Of a DNA stretch of 46,745 nt, positions 2,768-38,998 are shown piece after piece. The translations under genes were made by a program, and so were the position numbers. Location of the stretch: positions 47,798,000 through 47,844,744 of the forward strand of contig NC_068999.1 in assembly GCF_001194135.2 (NCBI RefSeq). Direction: 5' to 3'. The stretch is from Octopus bimaculoides. Taxonomy: Eukaryota. How positions within the stretch are numbered: the first letter of the stretch is position 1; each line of letters starts with the position of its first letter. Below the pieces are notes generated by a model. It worked only from the letters and a program-made list of their open reading frames with translations. It had not been told where the DNA came from and did no database searches.

Positions 2768-3404
2768 NNNNNNNNNNNNNNNNNNNNNNNNNNNNNNNNN
2801 NNNNNNNNNNNNNNNNNNNNNNNNNNNNNNNNNNNNNNNNNNNNNNNNNNNNNNNNNNNNNNNNNNNNNNNNNNNNNNNNNNNNNNNNNNNNNNNNNNNN
2901 NNNNNNNNNNNNNNNNNNNNNNNNNNNNNNNNNNNNNNNNNNNNNNNNNNNNNNNNNNNNNNNNNNNNNNNNNNNNNNNNNNNNNNNNNNNNNNNNNNNN
3001 NNNNNNNNNNNNNNNNNNNNNNNNNNNNNNNNNNNNNNNNNNNNNNNNNNNNNNNNNNNNNNNNNNNNNNNNNNNNNNNNNNNNNNNNNNNNNNNNNNNN
3101 NNNNNNNNNNNNNNNNNNNNNNNNNNNNNNNNNNNNNNNNNNNNNNNNNNNNNNNNNNNNNNNNNNNNNNNNNNNNNNNNNNNNNNNNNNNNNNNNNNNN
3201 NNNNNNNNNNNNNNNNNNNNNNNNNNNNNNNNNNNNNNNNNNNNNNNNNNNNNNNNNNNNNNNNNNNNNNNNNNNNNNNNNNNNNNNNNNNNNNNNNNNN
3301 NNNNNNNNNNNNNNNNNNNNNNNNNNNNNNNNNNNNNNNNNNNNNNNNNNNNNNNNNNNNNNNNNNNNNNNNNNNNNNNNNNNNNNNNNNNNNNNNNNNN
3401 NNNN
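2768..3404. other. Assembly gap (others at 4430-4871, 15324-15903, 17301-17417, 23845-24755, 29738-29921; short gaps at 2201-2211 and 8194-8203)
   Basis: Runs of N, several flanked by microsatellites. Confidence 0.98.
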
Positions 3405-4010
3405 ATATATATATATTTGTGTGTGTCTGGAGTTGAAAGGGAGTTAGGAGGTAATACATATCAAAAATTATGGTTGAAAATGTTATAAAGCTGGTAGAAA
3501 GGCACAGAAGCATATTTTAGAGAATGTTTAATAGTCTTGTTCCAGTGAGTGATTTAAAATATGACCGGTTTCGGTTATCAAATATTAGAGAGAATTTTTT
3601 AGGAAGTCAAAGAGACAAAAAAAAATGGCGGTGGGGTTCAACAGTTTGTAGCCATGTTTAATGCACTTCAGCGTCACTCCTTAAATATGTTGTGTCTACG
3701 AAGGTTTGTGGTGAGGTTCAGGAATTCTATTGAAAAGAAGTCTTTTGAATTGAATTGGTGGTTTCTATTCATGGTATGAGCAGCTGTGTGTCTATGTGTT
3801 TTGGAATATATTGTCAAAATCTTCCTTCTTTTTTTTTTACCTTTTTTTTTCTATTGAGAGAATATGGACAGCAGTTAAGGATGGTCGTTCAAAGAATTTA
3901 CAAGAAAATATTTTTCATTTGATTTTATTTATTTATTTTTTGTTTGCGTGGGTGTCAATATATGTGTGTTATTTTTGTTCTTTGGAAATATGTTTTGTAT
4001 ATTATGGTGG

Positions 4011-10111: not shown

Positions 10112-13044
10112 ATTTTGTTCATGAAATATGACTTTGTTCCGCATTTTCTGATGACAATGACTTTGTTCCGCATTTTCTGAATAACGATTTAGCATTAAAA
10201 TAGCGGAAATTTGGTAATAAGTGTATAGATATTGTGTGCGTTTATGTATAAGTATGTAAACACATATGCTCATATACATACGCATGAATATTTATGGATG
10301 CATGAATCTGTTTTATGGATGCGCTGGTATAATTCTTTTTTTTTTGTTTGTTTTGGTATAAAAGTTATAATCTATTTCGCAAATACATTATTTGCAAACA
10401 TTACAGAAATGATTTACATCGTGTCAAGAGTCGAAGAGAAAATAAATGATTTCTTTATAAATGTTTTCTGAGTTCCAGAAATGTTGTAACCAAAAATGAT
10501 ATTAAAGTTTATTTCGTTATTTGAATCTAGTTGAAAAAAAAAAGATGTCCGTAAATTTGGATGTAGTTGGCACCGTGTTGCTTGTTTTACATATTTTTTT
10601 TTTTACCGGTGTTTGTAATTTGATGCATGTCCACCAAAAATAGTTTCCTGTTAAGAACCAGAATGGAATTGTCTTTTCATTTATTAATATTCCATCTTCC
10701 CACTGATCGTAAAATACGTATATAAATTACAGAGAATTAGATTTTCAAACTGGCATTCAACAGTACTATGACTCTGAGACGTGCAATTGTCTTCAATACC
10801 TGTACACAAACTATTACTCTATAACAAATGCTACTGGCTACCTTTACTCCCCACCTCCAATGTTTTTTCTTTTTTAATTGTAAGTTCTGTTTGCGTCATA
10901 CGCCCTATTCTTTCATTCTGAATGTAACTTAGCAGAATTTAGACGATTAGATTAAATAATTTGTAATTTAAAGCTTCTTTCTTCTGTGTCCAATTCTCTC
11001 GAAGACATAACAGTATACAAGTAAAATATTAGATTCTACACAGGAATCGAACCGCTTTCCAGCAAACATTAGTCTTGCGCTTTGTGAAGACGTATATGAT
11101 CTTTCATTCCCAGTATTGTAGTAAGGCGGCGAGCTGGCAGAATCGGTACCGCGTCGGCCATTTATGCTTAGCGGCGTTTCTTCCGCCTTTACGTTCTGAT
11201 TTCAAATGTCGCTGAAGTCAACTTTGTCCTTCATCCTTTCGCGATCGATAAAATACGGGCCAGTTGGGCTCCTTCCCACAAAATTTCAGGTTTTGTGCTT
11301 ATAATCGAAAGAATTATAACAGATTTAATAGACTTGAGTTTCACAATATATAAAAAAAAGCTAAGCTGAAAGGGAAAATGTCCCAGGTTTTTTTCTTTGA
11401 TAAAATGAAATGTCACATTGTAAAGTTTGCAGCGAAGGAACAATTGACCAATTTTTTGGCAAGCACTTGGTACTCCCGGTGTAGGTGGGGAGTGCTTTTT
11501 TTTTCTTGTCACTGATAAATCGCTAACAGTGGACAACTTGATCAAATGCTGAATCTATTCACTTTCTTCATTAGTCATTCTTTCTAATTTTGTCACAAGG
11601 CCAGCAATTTTGAGAGGACGGGGCCAGTCGATTACATCGACCCCAGTACTTGATTGGTACTTATTTTATTGACCCCGAAGGGATGAAAGGCAAAACTAAC
11701 CTTACTGAGATTTGAACTCAGAACATAAAAAGCCGGAAGAAATGCAGCCAAGCATTTTGTCCGACGCGCTAACCGTTCCTCCAGCTCGTCGCCTTTCTCC
11801 CCAGTTATTGGAAAGAAATCATTACCACAGTAAACAATAGTGGATTAATGACTGTATTGACGAAAATAGATTCTTTGTAAATGTAGCAGAAAATTTATGG
11901 TAAAGAACTCAACTGGATTCCACGTTACGGATTTCGGGCCAAGTGTTGGCAAGTGGTCAGTGGTTTTTAATAATGTTGGAATCTGAATAAAAACTAAAAT
12001 GTTAATTTGACGTTTTAGAAGTTGAATCGCAGAGAAAGATGTTCACTCTAAAACTGTGGGAGATACGGGTGGATTGAGACCAGTCAAAGCTTTTGAAAAA
12101 ATCTATCATAACGACAGTTACTATCCATTTACCAAATGCTTCGGTCCCTGTTTCGAGTATTAGGTTCTGGATTGTATGTTACTTATTGGTTTCAAATTTT
12201 GGCACAAGGCTAGCAATTACGAGGGAGATGGGGTCGAGTTGATTTCATCGACCCCAGTGCCCAGCTGGTACTCAATATATTGACGCCAAAAGGATGAAAG
12301 GCAAAACTCGACTTCAGCGGAATTTGAACTCAGAACGTAAGAGAAGATGAAATGCCGCTAAGCATTTCGCCCAGCGTACTAACGGTCCTGCCAGCTCGCT
12401 GCCTTGTTGTAAGTAAATAATTACAATTATTAATTATTAATACTTTGAATAATGTATCCATATTTTATCATCACCATTAGAACTATAGTGGTAGTCTCAT
12501 AGTGACTGGCTAATCTTATTGTTGCACCACATTGTTCCATCCAGGAAAGAAATAGTCCATTTTGTAGAATTGGAATTGTTCTGTAAATTTATATCTCAAC
12601 TAAGTACTCAATACCTCTTCATGAATGTACACTAAACATATTTGTTATTCTTGGTCCATCTTAGCCATTGTCTTAGATTTGTGAGAATATTATTTCTGTA
12701 TTAACGCTCAGTTCAGTAATAAGAGATTTTCTGCTTAGTTTGAACGGTATATTCATCAATAATAACTCTCTTATATATAATACATTCAACCATAAGGTTT
12801 GACTTTTCTGGAATATATTCAATAAAAAGTAGGCCATATACAAACATCAAAATCTTAACTGTTCTTTGTAAAAGAACGAATAAAGATCTTAAAGACATTC
12901 CATTAGTACCTGGTTCGATTCTTCTCTGGAGACTCCATCAGTATACACATTATTGCCTGTAAAACATAATGAACAATCGCTTCTTCGAGAGAAGTTAGAT
13001 GTTTTTGTGTTATAACTGTTAGGAATTTGGCGCATTTGAGTTTT

Positions 13045-18974: not shown

Positions 18975-20163
18975 TTCTAAAGTTATTTATTTGAAAGCGT
19001 TGGATGCGAGATTGTGGATTGAGATGATGTGAAAACATCCCATTATTCTCTTAAATAACCAGAAGTAGTTTATTGAAAATGGCAGTAGTATTTTTGTTAC
19101 TGCCACTTGCGCTATTTTCGAAAGGCATTGCTTCCTTCAACATTCTAAATATGAGATATCTGCCTCCTGATATTCCGTGATTCACAATTCGAGCAACGTT
19201 TAAAAAATACCTCTGTTAATCCTTCAGGCACATCAGTAATCTTATAGTTAAAGAGGCCGATGGTGACATTTTCTTTCAGCTTTGCACCACATCCCGTCGT
19301 CTATGAACGCTTAACTAGTATCGTTGGACAACAGCCAACAGATGTATTCGAGGAGTGGAAGGTAAAGAATGCAAAGAATCAAAAACAAAGAATAAATGGG
19401 AAGGTCAGAATGGCTTTTGAATGAAAAGCTGTTCTAAAGGTTCTGGAGTTCTTTGGTGGTTACTCATGCGCATCATTCGTGGCAACGTGGGTACACACAC
19501 ACACGTATATACGTTTATATACATTAACACACATACACAAATGCATATATATATATACATATAAATATAGATATATATAGACACACGTATATGTGTATAT
19601 ACATGTATGTATGTATGTATACATACATACATACATATATATATATATATTGAGGGATCACTGTATATAATAAATCTTTTCTACGCTAGGCACAAGGCAG
19701 TCGATTAGATCGACCTCAGTACGCAACTGGTACTTAATTTATCGACCCCGAAAGGATGAAAGGAAAAGTCGACCTCGGCGGGATTTGAACTCAGAACATA
19801 ACGGCAGACGAAATACCGCTAAGCATTTCGCCCGGCGTGCGAACGTTTCTGCCAGCTCGCTGCCTTAATGTATATAACAAATAATCTAAAAATGAAATTA
19901 AAAACAATCTCAAAAAAATCTTTTCTTAGTTTAATCGAATTAAATCCTTAAGGCACCGCTCCTGATAGTTTACTTGAATCTATTCCATGGAATTTCTATT
20001 TGTGTGTCAACATCCTACCACCGCTTTCCTCGGAACATACTGTAGTTTCCCGCTCAAGTTCACCACTAAAGCTATATTGATTGGCACCATGCCAAGCCGA
20101 TTATTGGGCCAAACCCGTAACGAAAGATCTGGGACCGTACCCTTTAATTCCTTTCACACTTAC

Positions 20164-23745: not shown

Positions 23746-25100
23746 ATTCCAGATTTACCTTGTTTTCAATGAAAAGATTTGTATCAATATTAATAAACAC
23801 AATCATCTTAAGAAAGAATTAAAATGGTGTCCTCACTGGTCGGANNNNNNNNNNNNNNNNNNNNNNNNNNNNNNNNNNNNNNNNNNNNNNNNNNNNNNNN
23901 NNNNNNNNNNNNNNNNNNNNNNNNNNNNNNNNNNNNNNNNNNNNNNNNNNNNNNNNNNNNNNNNNNNNNNNNNNNNNNNNNNNNNNNNNNNNNNNNNNNN
24001 NNNNNNNNNNNNNNNNNNNNNNNNNNNNNNNNNNNNNNNNNNNNNNNNNNNNNNNNNNNNNNNNNNNNNNNNNNNNNNNNNNNNNNNNNNNNNNNNNNNN
24101 NNNNNNNNNNNNNNNNNNNNNNNNNNNNNNNNNNNNNNNNNNNNNNNNNNNNNNNNNNNNNNNNNNNNNNNNNNNNNNNNNNNNNNNNNNNNNNNNNNNN
24201 NNNNNNNNNNNNNNNNNNNNNNNNNNNNNNNNNNNNNNNNNNNNNNNNNNNNNNNNNNNNNNNNNNNNNNNNNNNNNNNNNNNNNNNNNNNNNNNNNNNN
24301 NNNNNNNNNNNNNNNNNNNNNNNNNNNNNNNNNNNNNNNNNNNNNNNNNNNNNNNNNNNNNNNNNNNNNNNNNNNNNNNNNNNNNNNNNNNNNNNNNNNN
24401 NNNNNNNNNNNNNNNNNNNNNNNNNNNNNNNNNNNNNNNNNNNNNNNNNNNNNNNNNNNNNNNNNNNNNNNNNNNNNNNNNNNNNNNNNNNNNNNNNNNN
24501 NNNNNNNNNNNNNNNNNNNNNNNNNNNNNNNNNNNNNNNNNNNNNNNNNNNNNNNNNNNNNNNNNNNNNNNNNNNNNNNNNNNNNNNNNNNNNNNNNNNN
24601 NNNNNNNNNNNNNNNNNNNNNNNNNNNNNNNNNNNNNNNNNNNNNNNNNNNNNNNNNNNNNNNNNNNNNNNNNNNNNNNNNNNNNNNNNNNNNNNNNNNN
24701 NNNNNNNNNNNNNNNNNNNNNNNNNNNNNNNNNNNNNNNNNNNNNNNNNNNNNNNGGGGGGGGGGGTAAAACCCTGTAGTTATGCCTATTTTAAGTCATT
24801 TTATTGCCATTAATTATTGTAGAGTCATAAAATAAATAATTATTTCACAGGAAGCAAAATAGTCGAACCATGTCTCTTTAAAAGGCTCAGTAAATGTATA
24901 CGAAATTGGTAATTTTTGGTAAAAATTACCGTAAAAAACCAAACAAGATTTAAACAAAGCAATCTCCTATCTTAAAGTGCAATTCAACGAGAAATAAAAT
25001 TTGAAGATGAAAATTAAAAATAAAGAACGGAAACTGAAATACACGAAAAGTCTGGCAAATTGTGTATTTCCTGCCCTCGAAGTGTAGTATATGATTAAAT

Positions 25101-33340: not shown

Positions 33341-35172
33341 TAATGCATTTTCTATGTACTTTGACAATGTAAATAAATATGCTTCTGTATAAATTGAATT
33401 GTCTTTTTTATTTTCGTCATTTACAAAAGCATTGATGACTTTATGGTTCATCCCGTTGAAGGGAACGATGGGTTCTGCAATCAAATATCTTCCTTCCATG
33501 ATTAGTGGGGAACAGAGAATAGGCAGGAATCCATTGCTATCCAATGTTGTATGGGAGAATGTGCAGATGGACTGAGATGGTGGTGTGTGACAGAGAAGGT
33601 TACAAGGAGGCTAAGAAAGAATTGGGAAAGAATCAGCGAATAAAACATTCTTTTATTCTTTTACTCGTTTCAGTCATTTGACTGTGGCCATGCTGGAGCA
33701 CCGCCTTCAAGGGTTTTAGCCGAACAAATTGACCCCAGGACTTATTTCTTATACCTAGTACTTATTCTATCAGTCTCTTTAGCCAAACCACCAAGTTACA
33801 GTGATGTAAACAGACCAACATTGGTTGTCAAGTGGTGATGGAGGGGGTGGACAAACATGGACACTTAGATATATACATATATGATGGGTTTCTTTCAGTT
33901 TCCGTCTACCAAATCCACTCAGAAGGTTTTGGTTGGCCTAAGACTATAGTAGAAGACACTTGCCCAAGGTGTCACACTGTGGGACTGAACTCGGAACCAT
34001 GTGATTGGGAAGCAAGCTTCTTACCACATAATCCCATGGTTTCTCTGTTAATACAGTGATAAACATTAATAAAAACATTTAATTGATAGAAAAGAGAAGT
34101 ATAATTTTTAAAATAAATTTGATCATTTATTACTTTTTACAATTGAATACAAACTGTTTTAGTCAAAAGGTGATGGAACAAATGGAGACAAAGAAACAAG
34201 CTGCACTGCAGGCAACCCATCTAGGAATGTAGTGATCCAAAAAAAGAAAAAAAAATACAGTTGTGAGAACTTGTAGTGTTTCTACAACGATCTCTATTGT
34301 ACCAATGGCATGACTAAGAGCTTCCAGTCCATACTGTAAAGTCTTTGGTGAGAGGAAAAGTATCCAGTAGCAAAAAAAAAAACAAAAACAAAAAACAGAT
34401 TTGGCCAGTTATCTCTCTTTTCACGTGTGACAAACCTCTACGAGCTACAAGTAGTGACACATGTCTACGCAATGCCAGCCTTTTAAAATGTACATTTAAT
34501 AATCTTTTCTACTATAGGCACAAGGCCTGGAATTTGTGGGGAGGAGGATAGTCGATCACATCAACCCCAGTACTTGACTGGTACTTAATTTATCGAACCC
34601 AAAAGGATGAAAGGCAAAACTGACCATGGCAGAATTTGAACTCAGAACATAAAGACAGACGAAATGCAGCCAAACCATTTTATCTAGCATGTTTGATGGC
34701 TGCGAGCTCACTGCCTTGGGAAAAAAATGTACATTAAATAATGATTGACAGAAATGGTATCATCAGAAGGAGAAGTGAAGAAATAAAGTTGTAGTTACTA
34801 AACATTTACTACAAATAAAATCTTACTTTATAAATATATGATGATAATAATAATAATGGTTTCAAATTTTGCCACATGGGCAGCAATTTGGTGGGAGGGA
34901 ATGAGCTGATTACATCAACTCCAGTGTTCAACTGGTACTTATTTTATCGACCCTGAAAGGATGAAAGGTAAAGTCGACCATGGTGGAGATGGAACTGAGA
35001 ACATAGCGATGGACGAAATACCGCTAAGCATTTTGTTCAGCACACTAATGATTCTGCCAGCTCACCACCTTCCGTAATAATTATAATAATGTCATCATTA
35101 TTATTATTCAAAAGTTGTATGCTAATTTAATTAACATGGATGTTACTTGAAGTTTGCTGACTACAAGTCTTC

Positions 35173-35385
35173 TCAAATCTCAAGAATCTTTCTTAGGATT
35201 CTTACAGAATACAGGATGGCACTTTTCTGCAGGTTGACAATGCAAGTCTCAATTCCTGTATCCTTTAGCCACTTTGGTAACATTTTGGGTGTTGTGCCAA
35301 GCGCACCAATTCCCATAAGAACAACTGTCACCTTTGTCGTCAACAATCTCTTCGTCTCCCCGACTAATGTCTGATATTTCTTAAG
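35173..35385 (-). mobile_element. 5'-truncated RLE-clade (R4/Dong-like) retrotransposon, endonuclease C-terminus
   Basis: LKKYQTLVGETKRLLTTKVTVVLMGIGALGTTPKMLPKWLKDTGIETCIVNLQKSAILYSVRILRKILEI* matches KY..L..E..R.W...V...GALG..PK.L...LQK.A.L...RILR. The 3' UTR runs into (TAA)n near 35097-35108. Confidence 0.8.
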
Positions 35386-36930
35386 TTATGCTACAGTATC
35401 AACAGAAAGGCTGTCTTCTTCATTCTGAGGAATGGTGAGAATATTCTTTTGTCTTTCATAATTAGACTGCCATTGTGCTATGGGAAAGATTTTCTCTCTA
35501 AAATGCCAGAGACTGAATAAAATTAGGATTGTTGCCACAGTAGAACATACACTAAGAATGACAACAACTAATGTTCTATTATGGTGTTTAGTATCGTAGC
35601 CATATGCTAATTTATGACAATGAAAATCAGAAGGCTTTAATGTCGAAACAGGTAGGTCCAGAAGATGCTTGGGTGAACGACAGCACAATGATTTTTGTAT
35701 GAAATTCTTTTTCTTATTACTAATTTCATTAAAAACATCTAGCAGCCATTGTGCATCACAATCGCAATCAATAAAATTTCCACTCAAGTCAAGAGTTTCC
35801 AAATTCTGCCAGGGAAGAAAATGTTTAGGAAATTTATATATTCCATTATTATTTAAATAAACAATTTTCAAAGCAGGTAAATTATAGAGTGCTTTTGGGT
35901 GTATGTATTTCAAAAGTGGGTTGAAAGCAATATGGAGCACTCTTAAATGGGTAAGATTAAAAGCTAGACCATCGATTTTTGTTAAGTCATTAAGATCGTT
36001 TAGATATAAAACTTCAAGATGAGATAAATTGTAAAACGAATTTGATGCAATAACACTTATCCTATTTGCACCAAGATTAAGTTTTGAAAGTTGTTCTAGT
36101 TGAAGAAATGCTTGTGTAGGTACAACATGTAAATAGTTTTGATTCAAGTCTAAGGATTCTAAAGAATTCTCAAGCCCGCTGAATGCTTTGTCTTCAATTA
36201 TTTTCAAATTATTATTTGCAATATTAATATCTGCAAGCATTGAATTATTATAAAAGCTATTATTGAGTAAATGATATATGTTATTACCTTGTAAGTTAAG
36301 AAACCGTAAATGTTTAACATTTTTGAAAGCTACAGTAGGAATAGTCGTCAATCTATTAGATATCAGATGCAAGCTATCCAATGCATAGAGACCATTGAAG
36401 GCATTGTCACTTATACTATGAATAAAATTCCCAGTTAGATTCAATTCTAGTAGTTTGGGAAAATACTGGAAAGTATTGTCGAGTAAAACAGTCAAATGAT
36501 TTTGACTTATATCTAAAGACACCAAGTTATTTAAACCATGAAATGTTTTGTTGCTTAGATTCGATAAAAGGTTATTCCTCATGATCAATGTGTGCAGTTT
36601 TCCCAGGTGCTCAAAAGAATTATCTTCAATATTGATCAAACCATTAGAGTTAATGTCGAAATATGTTAAACTGCTATATTGATGCAGATCAACATTTAAT
36701 TGCTTAATTTGATTGCCTCTTAGGACTAACTCTGTAATAAATTTAGGTGAATCAATATCATCTGGTATAATAGTTTTAAATGCATTTGAACAATCTAAAA
36801 GCCCAAAGTTTTTAAAACAATTACAGTTTTCAGGACAATGTACAGCAATACATACATTTCCAAATGTCATGAATAATAAAATTATCCTAGTTAAAATCAT
36901 TTTTTCAGACACCCAATCACCAGATCTCAT
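35386..36930 (-). CDS. LRR single-pass transmembrane protein, tartan/capricious-like
   Basis: Signal peptide (likely from Met11, MILTRIILLF), LRRNT CPENCNC..DCS, about 13 LRRs, and FLPWQNLETLDLSGNFIDCDC (cf. Caps/Trn LFPWKDLQTLDLSENPLSCDC). LRRCT, TM TLVVVILSVCSTVATILILFSLW, short tail, no Ig or TIR domain. Acceptor TCTTTTCAG at 37118 suggests an upstream 5' UTR intron. Confidence 0.9.
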   Translation of the reverse strand: MRSGDWVSEKMILTRIILLFMTFGNVCIAVHCPENCNCFKNFGLLDCSNAFKTIIPDDIDSPKFITELVLRGNQIKQLNVDLHQYSSLTYFDINSNGLINIEDNSFEHLGKLHTLIMRNNLLSNLSNKTFHGLNNLVSLDISQNHLTVLLDNTFQYFPKLLELNLTGNFIHSISDNAFNGLYALDSLHLISNRLTTIPTVAFKNVKHLRFLNLQGNNIYHLLNNSFYNNSMLADINIANNNLKIIEDKAFSGLENSLESLDLNQNYLHVVPTQAFLQLEQLSKLNLGANRISVIASNSFYNLSHLEVLYLNDLNDLTKIDGLAFNLTHLRVLHIAFNPLLKYIHPKALYNLPALKIVYLNNNGIYKFPKHFLPWQNLETLDLSGNFIDCDCDAQWLLDVFNEISNKKKNFIQKSLCCRSPKHLLDLPVSTLKPSDFHCHKLAYGYDTKHHNRTLVVVILSVCSTVATILILFSLWHFREKIFPIAQWQSNYERQKNILTIPQNEEDSLSVDTVA

Positions 36931-38109
36931 TGCATAGAATTTATTAAAAAAAAAAAATGAAATTAAAAGTTCATAATGAAAACTTTGTATTTATTTATGT
37001 CCAAGGTTCTGTTTCTCTATATTTGGTAAGAGATTTAGTCCAGAACTTTTGAAAGATTTCTTTTTTGAAGGCACTGAAGGTGGATTTTGTCTCTTGTTTT
37101 TACCATCAGTTCAAAATCTGAAAAGATAGGAATAATATTTTAAAAGTCCATTATTCATGAAAACAACAGAATATATGAGGGAATTAATTATAGCAAATAC
37201 ATAGACTTGATTGAAATAAAAAAAAAAATCTATTAGTGCTAAAATTACATATACTGAATTAATATTCTTTAGCTAACAAAAGAGGGAGAAAGAACGAAAG
37301 AAAGAAAGAGGGGGAAGAAGACATAAGTTGAAAGAGAGGAACTATTACAGAGGGTGAGAGAATATATGTAAGCAAGAGAATGAGAGAAGGGAGAGAATCG
37401 GTTGAAAACTGCAGTTTTTAGAGAAAAACCTGTGTAACACACCTTTTCCCCCCGATTTCTCGCTCTACGCAGATCTGGGCAAAAAAAACTGTAGTGCTTG
37501 ACCATCCTTGGCACATAAGTAATGTGTGTGTAAAGTTTGGTAGAAAATTGGTTGAAAACTATAGAAATGTATTCATATTAGACATACAGACACACTCGCA
37601 CACAGAGCCATCTTTTAGGCTGATTAGATAAAGTCTCTTAATGACATTGTGTTCTTTCTGGTTATTCTTTTATTCTTTTACCTGCTTCAGTCATTTGACT
37701 ACGGCCATGCTGGAGCACCACCTTTAGTGAAACGAATCGACCCCAGGACTTGTTCTTTGTAAGCCCAGCACTTATTCTATCGGTATCTTTTGCTCAACCG
37801 CTAAGTTACAGGAACGTAAACACAGCGACATTGGTTGTCAAGCGCTGGTGGGGGTACAAACACAGACACACAAACATGTGAACCCAGAACCGTGTGGTTG
37901 GGAAGCAAGCTTCTTACCACATAGCAACACCTGCACCTACAGCCACACCTGTGCCCAAAATATAAAATATTTTAGAAGAGTATATAAAATATATTAGAAG
38001 ACAATCTATTGAAGACTTTACAAACAATACGCACGCACGAAGTTAAAGATATAAAATGGCGACAACTTACCCATCGCACCCTGTATGTTCGCACGTATCT
38101 ATGTATCTA

Positions 38110-38998
38110 TGAAGATGATACAAAAGTTTCTCAGAGGATACAGAGCCCTAGAAATGTTGCGCACTTGCAACAGGAGTTGGACGCAATATACTGGTGGGTT
38201 GAGGACAATAACATGAGAGAAAAAGATGTTTTATATGACACATTCTACCAGTATCCCAAGTTTGAAAGTGTTTCGTTAAGAAAACAAGTGTTGGCCGTCA
38301 AACCATAACGATCCAAGTTGGCAATAAAATGCAGACGGCTGGCCGGATGAATTCTAAGAACTTTCAGAACGACAGAAGAGGAAACCATGATGGTCTGCTG
38401 GAGAGCATTTGTCCTCGACCGTTTAGACTACTGCTCCGAATTATGGTCACCACAGTGTAAAATTAACGACGGGTCTCGAAGCAATGCAGCGCAGCTACAC
38501 AAAGAAAATTGTCTCATCGCAACATGTCAGTTACTGAAAAAGACTGAAAAGGTTAAGACTCAACTCCATAGAACGAAGCGGGGGAAAGATATGCAGTGAT
38601 ATACATCTGGAAAATCCTAAAACTTTAGCATTGAAAGTTAACACAAACAGCAGAATGGAGCACACTGCATAATATCAAAATCCCCAATGTTACCATCAGG
38701 ATACAGGGTCAGATATTGCAACAGCTTGGGTGTCAAGGGCCCATAGGCCTTCAATATCCTCCCAAAAACCTGAGAGACCTACACGAGGTGGATGTAGGTG
38801 TTTTCAAAACAAAACTGGATCTCCTCCTTTTAAGATTTCAGGATGAACCTACCTCGAGGCTAGAAACGCAGATGAGGGGAGCAACATCAAACTCAATCAT
38901 TCACCAAATGTCACATGTCAGAGGAGGTTTCAAGTAGTGAAAGTATAGCAAAGCTAACGGCGGTGCCCCAGCATGGCCGCAGCTCTCGAGCTGAAACT
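38110..38998 (+). mobile_element. Degraded CR1/L2-group LINE 3' end
   Basis: YEDDTK (from YADDTK)..LQQELDAIYWW..NNM; GWILRTFRT..RLDYCSELWSP; FNILPKNLR..FKTKLD..DEP, with frameshifts and stops. Confidence 0.85.

Follow-up and report, generated by a model that had tools for sequence, protein, structure and literature searches.

A Dong/R4-like retrotransposon fragment at the stop codon of an octopus leucine-rich repeat receptor gene, probably an untranslated insertion that imitates a readthrough extension

We present an analysis of 46,745 nucleotides of Octopus bimaculoides DNA (contig NC_068999.1, positions 47,798,000 to 47,844,744; this whole stretch is referred to as the window, and coordinates are those of the window unless another locus is named). 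The analysis concerns a gene for a leucine-rich repeat (LRR) transmembrane receptor on the minus strand and a piece of transposon that begins directly after the stop codon of this gene. The piece comprises the end of the open reading frame (ORF) of a long interspersed nuclear element (LINE) and the adjoining 3' untranslated region (3'UTR) of the element; it occupies the same junction in three Octopus species, and its reading frame is broken in two of them. We conclude that it is very probably a 5'-truncated copy (~315 bp) of a Dong/R4-like LINE, inserted where the receptor 3'UTR begins, at a site that was TAA or rich in TAA, and that its 70 open codons, which happen to continue the frame of the receptor, are unlikely to constitute a functional protein tail.

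The receptor coding sequence (CDS) is a single exon at 35386–36930 on the minus strand, delimited by the ORF list, Pfam matches and alignments with orthologues. It encodes 514 amino acids if translation begins at the first ATG; the O. sinensis model starts at the ATG at 36900, which gives 504. The protein has the layout of a signal peptide followed by LRRs and a transmembrane segment (Pfam LRR_8 at 1.4e-53, with a weak match to LRRCT). The NCBI name of the O. sinensis orthologue, XP_029648035.1, is ‘leucine-rich repeat neuronal protein 2-like’. The receptor is 92% identical to this protein and 62% identical to the orthologue in Argonauta hians, and the O. vulgaris orthologue is CAI9736996.1. 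Between O. bimaculoides and O. sinensis the CDS has a ratio of non-synonymous to synonymous substitution rates (dN/dS, or omega) of 0.27, with dS of 0.148. The exact receptor sequence is encoded on chromosome CM046619.1 of the O. bimaculoides assembly GCA_001194135.2; no transcript-derived contigs encoding it were found in the collections searched, where it was represented by the genome assembly only.

The receptor ends in ..SLSVDTVA, the last codons being GTA GCA TAA. The stop TAA (35386–35388, minus strand) is followed by C and forms the 5' junction of the LINE fragment, as placed to ~2 nt from the alignments with orthologues and with other copies of the element. Its position is kept in all orthologues compared, as TAA in O. 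sinensis and O. vulgaris and as TGA in A. hians, and so are the terminal residues, which read ..DTVA in Octopus and ..DTVT in Argonauta. Since the orthologues, including that of Argonauta, all terminate at this residue, the stop is ancestral in its position and was not made by the insertion. The possibility that the element itself supplied the stop, with homology reaching into the CDS, was considered and rejected, because the fragment-free Argonauta gene ends at the same residue and because the alignments of the element copies lend no support upstream of the junction.

The stretch after the receptor TAA starts with CTT AAG AAA TAT and continues in the same frame for 70 sense codons (35176–35385, minus strand; translation LKKYQTLVGETKRLLTTKVTVVLMGIGALGTTPKMLPKWLKDTGIETCIVNLQKSAILYSVRILRKILEI) to a TGA at 35173–35175, as an earlier note on this DNA had described. 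The earlier note had also assigned the stretch to the C-terminus of a retrotransposon with a restriction-like endonuclease (RLE), and database comparisons bear this out. A HMMER search with the tail against 1.84 billion representative proteins yielded 243 matches at E <= 1e-3 (the best at 4.9e-15), almost all of them to short predicted proteins, i.e., other transposon fragments. Most of the matches listed reach their own C-terminus or come near it, many stopping at residue 69–70 of the query, and on this ground the TGA is taken to be the native stop of the element. A TGA also stands at the aligned position in three other copies of the element (L004, L007 and L008), and a fourth copy (L006) has TGG there. 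The Pfam family DUF5708 (E = 0.11) is only a chance match to the tail and was rejected. No predicted protein containing the tail was found by a word-indexed search of a database of 5.8 billion sequences with the 70 residues.

What the fragment is a part of can be seen in its longer relatives. In five of them (P0237, P0178, P0122, P0121 and P0127) the motifs C..C..H..C, RRPD, D(F/I)A(I/V)P and EKxEKY lie directly upstream of the part that aligns to the window and run into it without a break, in the context RRPD...D(F/I)A(I/V)P...EKIEKYQDL. The window copy keeps only the end of the RLE domain, from K-KY onward, together with the C-terminal tail of the ORF, and is devoid of the reverse transcriptase (RT), the CCHC knuckle and the PD..D part of the nuclease. 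The full-length relative P0237 (1110 aa) has an RT domain (RVT_1 at 2.3e-21), a CCHC knuckle and RRPD...D...EKxEKY, and no apurinic/apyrimidinic (AP) endonuclease domain (Exo_endo_phos) was matched in it. Its best matches among solved structures are R2 proteins (9nl2, 9dou and 8gh6) at 4e-28 over the RT, with a second aligned stretch over the CCHC/RLE region. No other copies of the element were found within the window by tblastn or blastn; in particular, tblastn of P0237 matches only 35176–35382. Judged by these matches, the fragment is the C-terminal end of the ORF of an R2-superfamily (RLE-type) LINE. The element appears to be Dong/R4-like, an assignment made from its RLE features and the (TAA)n tails of its copies. 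LINEs of the Dong-R4 class are reported to be abundant in Octopus genomes and to have been active recently (PMC13282606, PMC8967140), and of the recently active RLE classes in O. vulgaris (Dong-R4, Hero and R2) Dong-R4 is by far the most abundant (PMC13282606).

The boundaries of the fragment were determined by aligning it with four unrelated copies of the element (L004, L006, L007 and L008). Homology to these copies starts at or just after the receptor stop, runs through the ORF stop and ~65–75 nt of 3'UTR, and ends in (AAT)n. The 5' junction can be placed only within ~2 nt, as seen when GAA AAA CTT GAC AAA TAT of L006 is set against GCA TAA CTT AAG AAA TAT of the window, and the alignment leaves room for a possible microhomology of 1–2 nt at the stop codon. 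In the window the element 3'UTR, which aligns to those of all four copies, occupies 35109–35172 on the minus strand (~64 nt, or about 65) and contains the first sequence resembling a poly(A) signal after the receptor stop, ATTAAA at 35131–35126; a hexamer scan found no AATAAA or ATTAAA in the stretch from the receptor stop to the TGA that closes the tail. Next comes what the sequence and the aligned copies identify as a remnant of a (TAA)n-type tail or target (35072–35108, minus strand), consisting of (AAT)4 at 35108–35097 and a degenerate AT-rich part of ~25 nt, GATGACATTATTATAATTATTACGG, down to 35072. The earlier note had the 3' end of the element abutting (TAA)n; the array is in fact limited to the four units and the degenerate part, and Tandem Repeats Finder called nothing at the TAA remnant.

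The tails of the other copies are better preserved. The L007 tail has ~45 AAT units after a 3'UTR of ~75 nt, that of L004 has more than 20 units, and L006 and L008 have AAT-type tails in the corresponding place. L004, which is also truncated at its 5' end, has (TAA)n to its left and right. The suggestion of the earlier note that the element inserted at a TAA stop or in TAA-rich sequence is plausible in view of the (TAA)n tails of the family, the location of L004 inside a (TAA)n array and the known targeting of TAA microsatellites by Dong, including in a snail (PMC3812793). Two of the copies show additional structure. At the 5' junction of L004 (L004:5930–6030), inside the (TAA)n array, there is a tandem duplication of ~22 nt, GACCAGATATGA(C/T)TGTGGAG, and in L008 (L008:4363–4800) a second copy of the same element directly follows the short AAT tail of the first. 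These arrangements suggest that new copies have inserted more than once into the tails of older ones.

Presence and absence at orthologous loci, a check for which the earlier note had called, were compared in O. sinensis (L001), O. vulgaris (L005) and A. hians. The first two species have the same fragment with the same junction; in A. hians it is absent, and GA-rich low-complexity sequence directly follows the TGA instead. Because all three Octopus species share the fragment and its junction, the insertion predates the split of O. bimaculoides from O. sinensis and O. vulgaris. A 25-nt segment, CTGCAGAAAAGTGCCATCCTGTATT, at 35208–35232 (minus strand) is present in the window and missing from the alignments and translations of L001 and L005; as the four unrelated copies L004, L006, L007 and L008 contain it, the sister lineage must have lost it. 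With the frame shifted by this deletion, the sister species read ..DTVA*LKKYQ...CIVDL*ES*, with 52 sense codons followed by TAA in O. sinensis and TAG in O. vulgaris. At the nucleotide level O. bimaculoides and O. sinensis are 94.7% identical in the ‘coding’ part of the fragment and 94.9% identical in the non-coding 3'UTR of the element, and other orthologous non-coding blocks at the locus span 82–96%, a range that includes both values.

We propose that a copy of a TAA-targeting RLE LINE integrated by target-primed reverse transcription in an Octopus ancestor and was truncated at its 5' end, the landing site being either the receptor TAA stop or the TAA-rich beginning of the 3'UTR. Its position right at the stop would reflect the TAA preference of the element combined with the fact that the gene would not have survived any insertion farther upstream. 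Transcription of the fragment as part of the 3'UTR is almost certain, and translation of the receptor probably terminates at the conserved ..DTVA-UAA. The agreement of frame between receptor and fragment is expected once in three by chance and is most simply taken as such an outcome. The length of the open stretch has an ordinary cause. Runs of at least 70 open codons directly after a stop occur at 153 of 4786 positions in the AT-rich window (3.2%); the openness is therefore not random, yet it is expected of a stretch that derives from a transposon ORF. That it is still open is likewise the expected state, since random re-placement of the nine substitutions observed between O. bimaculoides and O. 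sinensis created a stop in only 31% of trials. On this view, the 70 codons have stayed open in O. bimaculoides owing solely to the shortness, coding origin and slight divergence of the piece.

The main alternative, put forward in the earlier note, is a recoded C-terminal extension, in which the UAA is bypassed by readthrough or by a double A-to-I edit and the LINE tail hides the ..TVA end, either in O. bimaculoides or in an ancestral version of 52 amino acids. Besides the mere existence of 70 open in-frame codons, three observations favour it and weigh against a purely untranslated insertion. Over the 51 codons shared by O. bimaculoides and O. sinensis the nine substitutions are five synonymous and four non-synonymous, an omega of 0.24 close to that of the receptor CDS, as purifying selection on a translated tail would produce; the first 70 nt past the stop differ at one site between the species, compared with nine sites in the last 75 nt of the CDS; and the stop is followed by C, the leakiest nucleotide at position +4 after a stop codon. 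The omega value, which belongs to a dN/dS check suggested in the earlier note, points in the direction of selection without reaching significance: five or more synonymous changes arise in 6.3% of random re-placements (permutation P = 0.063) and the +1 control frame has an omega of 0.34 over the same tail. Together with the equal identity in the coding and non-coding parts of the fragment, this makes it weak evidence for translation.

The remaining observations are unfavourable to a recoded extension. The 25-nt deletion and the in-frame stops in O. sinensis and O. vulgaris break the frame, a result that the earlier note had itself listed as refuting its proposal. The context of the stop is UAA CUU AAG, with neither a CUAG nor a CARYYA motif, whereas known readthrough contexts have UGA or UAG followed by a 3' motif of the CUAG or CARYYA type, or a downstream structure, and UAA is the most efficient terminator. 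Recoding of UAA to UGG takes two A-to-I edits. Coleoid mRNAs are heavily edited and stop loss by UAG to UGG is a recognised class of editing (PMC8382921), but it is the only stop loss that a literature search for UAA editing in coleoids found described. Nor does the RNA around the stop look like an editing substrate: the 301 nt surrounding it show no excess of structure (z = +0.55, with 69 of 100 shuffled sequences folding at least as well), no inverted repeat within 33500–37500 involves 35386–35388, and Rfam gives no match around the stop, in agreement with the statement in the earlier note that no editing-guide hairpin is visible there. Finally, the free ..DTVA/..DTVT end is conserved as far as Argonauta and the tail is part of no predicted protein. 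The proposal that readthrough or editing appends the tail thus finds no support in the orthologous frames, the stop codon, the RNA structure or the conserved native end, and we regard a recoded extension in either species setting as very unlikely. We give hardly any credence to its more specific form, in which the tail is decoded in a fraction of O. bimaculoides mRNA by UAA-C readthrough or a double edit as a domesticated Dong-type tail of 71 residues that buries ..TVA, and in which its use would have left a trace in the form of low dN/dS over the first 51 codons. If the UAA were decoded as sense, the junction peptides would read ..SVDTVA-W/X-LKKYQTLVGETK, and the peptides expected from a translated tail would include ..SLSVDTVAWLK, YQTLVGETK and VTVVLMGIGALGTTPK.

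A different kind of function would be that of an exapted 3'UTR module, where the untranslated fragment is kept for a regulatory role in the RNA, e.g., for the ATTAAA at 35131–35126 or for microRNA or RNA-binding protein sites in the first 70 nt. The hexamer is the first after the stop and lies in the element 3'UTR, the next ones being an ATTAAA 886 nt and an AATAAA 1255 nt away from the stop, and together with its surroundings it is invariant in the three Octopus species; the fragment as a whole is ~95% identical between species, against a dS of 0.148 in the CDS. However, this identity falls within the 82–96% seen in non-coding blocks nearby, other copies of the element do not share the hexamer and its use as a poly(A) signal is putative, and the sister lineage tolerated the loss of 25 nt. 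Exaptation is accordingly improbable in our judgement, though less so than recoding. We attach next to no probability to an artefact of assembly or annotation, whether a false join of fragment and gene or a true CDS that goes on through splicing. An alternative 3' structure is indeed proposed in the model CAI9736996.1, which places a donor in the transmembrane segment and its last exon farther downstream, but the junction is identical in three independent chromosome-level assemblies of three species, the uninterrupted ORF to ..DTVA is conserved to Argonauta, and the terminal ‘exon’ of O. vulgaris is frameshifted in O. bimaculoides.

The O. vulgaris model in question (437 aa) uses the consensus donor AGT|GTATGT in the transmembrane-coding segment, spliced to a downstream terminal exon PPCNLLYHKPLTTISVHLHILPYNIG. 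In the window the donor is present at 35549–35550 and the ‘exon’ region corresponds to 33540–33610 on the minus strand, and an isoform of this type would make both the stop codon and the LINE fragment intronic. The downstream ‘exon’, given its frameshift in O. bimaculoides, may be a non-coding 3' exon or an artefact of the model.

An untranslated Dong/R4-like insertion can be compared with several known systems. It resembles the Dong/R4 LINEs (Dong of Bombyx mori, DongAg, and DongBg of Biomphalaria glabrata) in its RLE end, short 3'UTR and (TAA)n-type tail and in having related copies in (TAA)n arrays; it differs in that the window copy is limited to the last ~315 bp and that its 5' flank is a single TAA, the stop of the gene, rather than a microsatellite. 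The relative P0237 shares with R2 the domain order, the RT similarity (E = 4e-28) and the lack of a detected AP-endonuclease, whereas R2 inserts in 28S ribosomal DNA and is without a (TAA)n tail, and the similarity outside the RT is weak. An open in-frame extension after the stop of a neuronal-type membrane protein is also what programmed readthrough looks like in the mammalian UGA-CUAG genes and in Drosophila, where many cases are described (PMC3840789); here, in contrast, UAA-CUU has no stimulatory motif, the frame is broken in the sister species, and the extension is a recent transposon fragment instead of a conserved one. The likeness to coleoid stop loss by A-to-I editing (UAG to UGG, PMC8382921) consists in the same group of organisms and the same proposed change of a stop to Trp, and the difference in the two adenosines required, the lack of a predicted duplex around them and the present case being drawn from genome sequence only.

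As such, the locus is an ordinary case of a known kind, i.e., one more 5'-truncated Dong/R4-like LINE in a 3'UTR, in an octopus genome rich in repeats. It also provides a worked example of how a TAA-targeting element on a TAA stop can leave an open in-frame ORF that mimics a readthrough extension, and scans for stop recoding in cephalopods should use comparison with sister species to screen out young transposon ORFs before editing is invoked. If the tail were translated after all, it would be a rare documented instance of a transposon nuclease fragment captured as the recoded C-terminal extension of a neuronal receptor.

Several minor observations concern the surroundings of the receptor. The UGA-CUAG motif promotes readthrough in mammals, and the stop of A. 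hians (L002:11555–11575) stands in the context TGA CTA G; only five codons separate it from a TAG in the same frame, and any readthrough extension in Argonauta would consequently be tiny. A convergent gene of the MMgT family (PF10270; L003:13591–18042) lies on the opposite strand ~2 kb past the receptor stop in O. bimaculoides and Argonauta, and farther downstream of the receptor in O. sinensis and O. vulgaris. It is conceivable that the receptor and the MMgT-family gene have overlapping 3'UTRs and hence form sense-antisense RNA.

The AT-rich remnant is abutted at 35071 by the end, ..CACCACCTT, of an abundant octopus repeat resembling a short interspersed nuclear element (SINE), which lies in the opposite orientation (34880–35071, plus strand) and is not part of the LINE. 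This SINE-like repeat of ~190 nt recurs at least 12 times elsewhere in the window (at least 13 copies in total, including those at 34531–34717, 19703–19866, 12212–12438, 11602–11795 and 11123–11266), several of which have full 3' ends ..GCCAGCTCGCCGCCTT followed by unrelated sequence. Assignment of the AT-rich remnant to the SINE was rejected, since the other SINE copies end in ..CGCCTT with unrelated flanks. The repeat also stands by the receptor at the orthologous loci of O. sinensis and O. vulgaris, and in O. sinensis extra sequence absent from the window lies beside the SINE-like copy downstream of the receptor, part of which (L001, ~12008–12168) is another copy. Elsewhere in the window, at 38009–38937 (plus strand), several short ORFs, e.g., ..VCWRAFVLDRLDYCSELWSPQ.., resemble remnants of another retroelement, and this block is conserved with O. 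sinensis L001 7081–8096 at 89% identity. Two 1-kb bins have very low G+C content, 0.075 at 24001–25000 and 0.187 at 3001–4000, and their base counts suggest either an assembly gap, with a run of N, or extremely AT-rich simple sequence.

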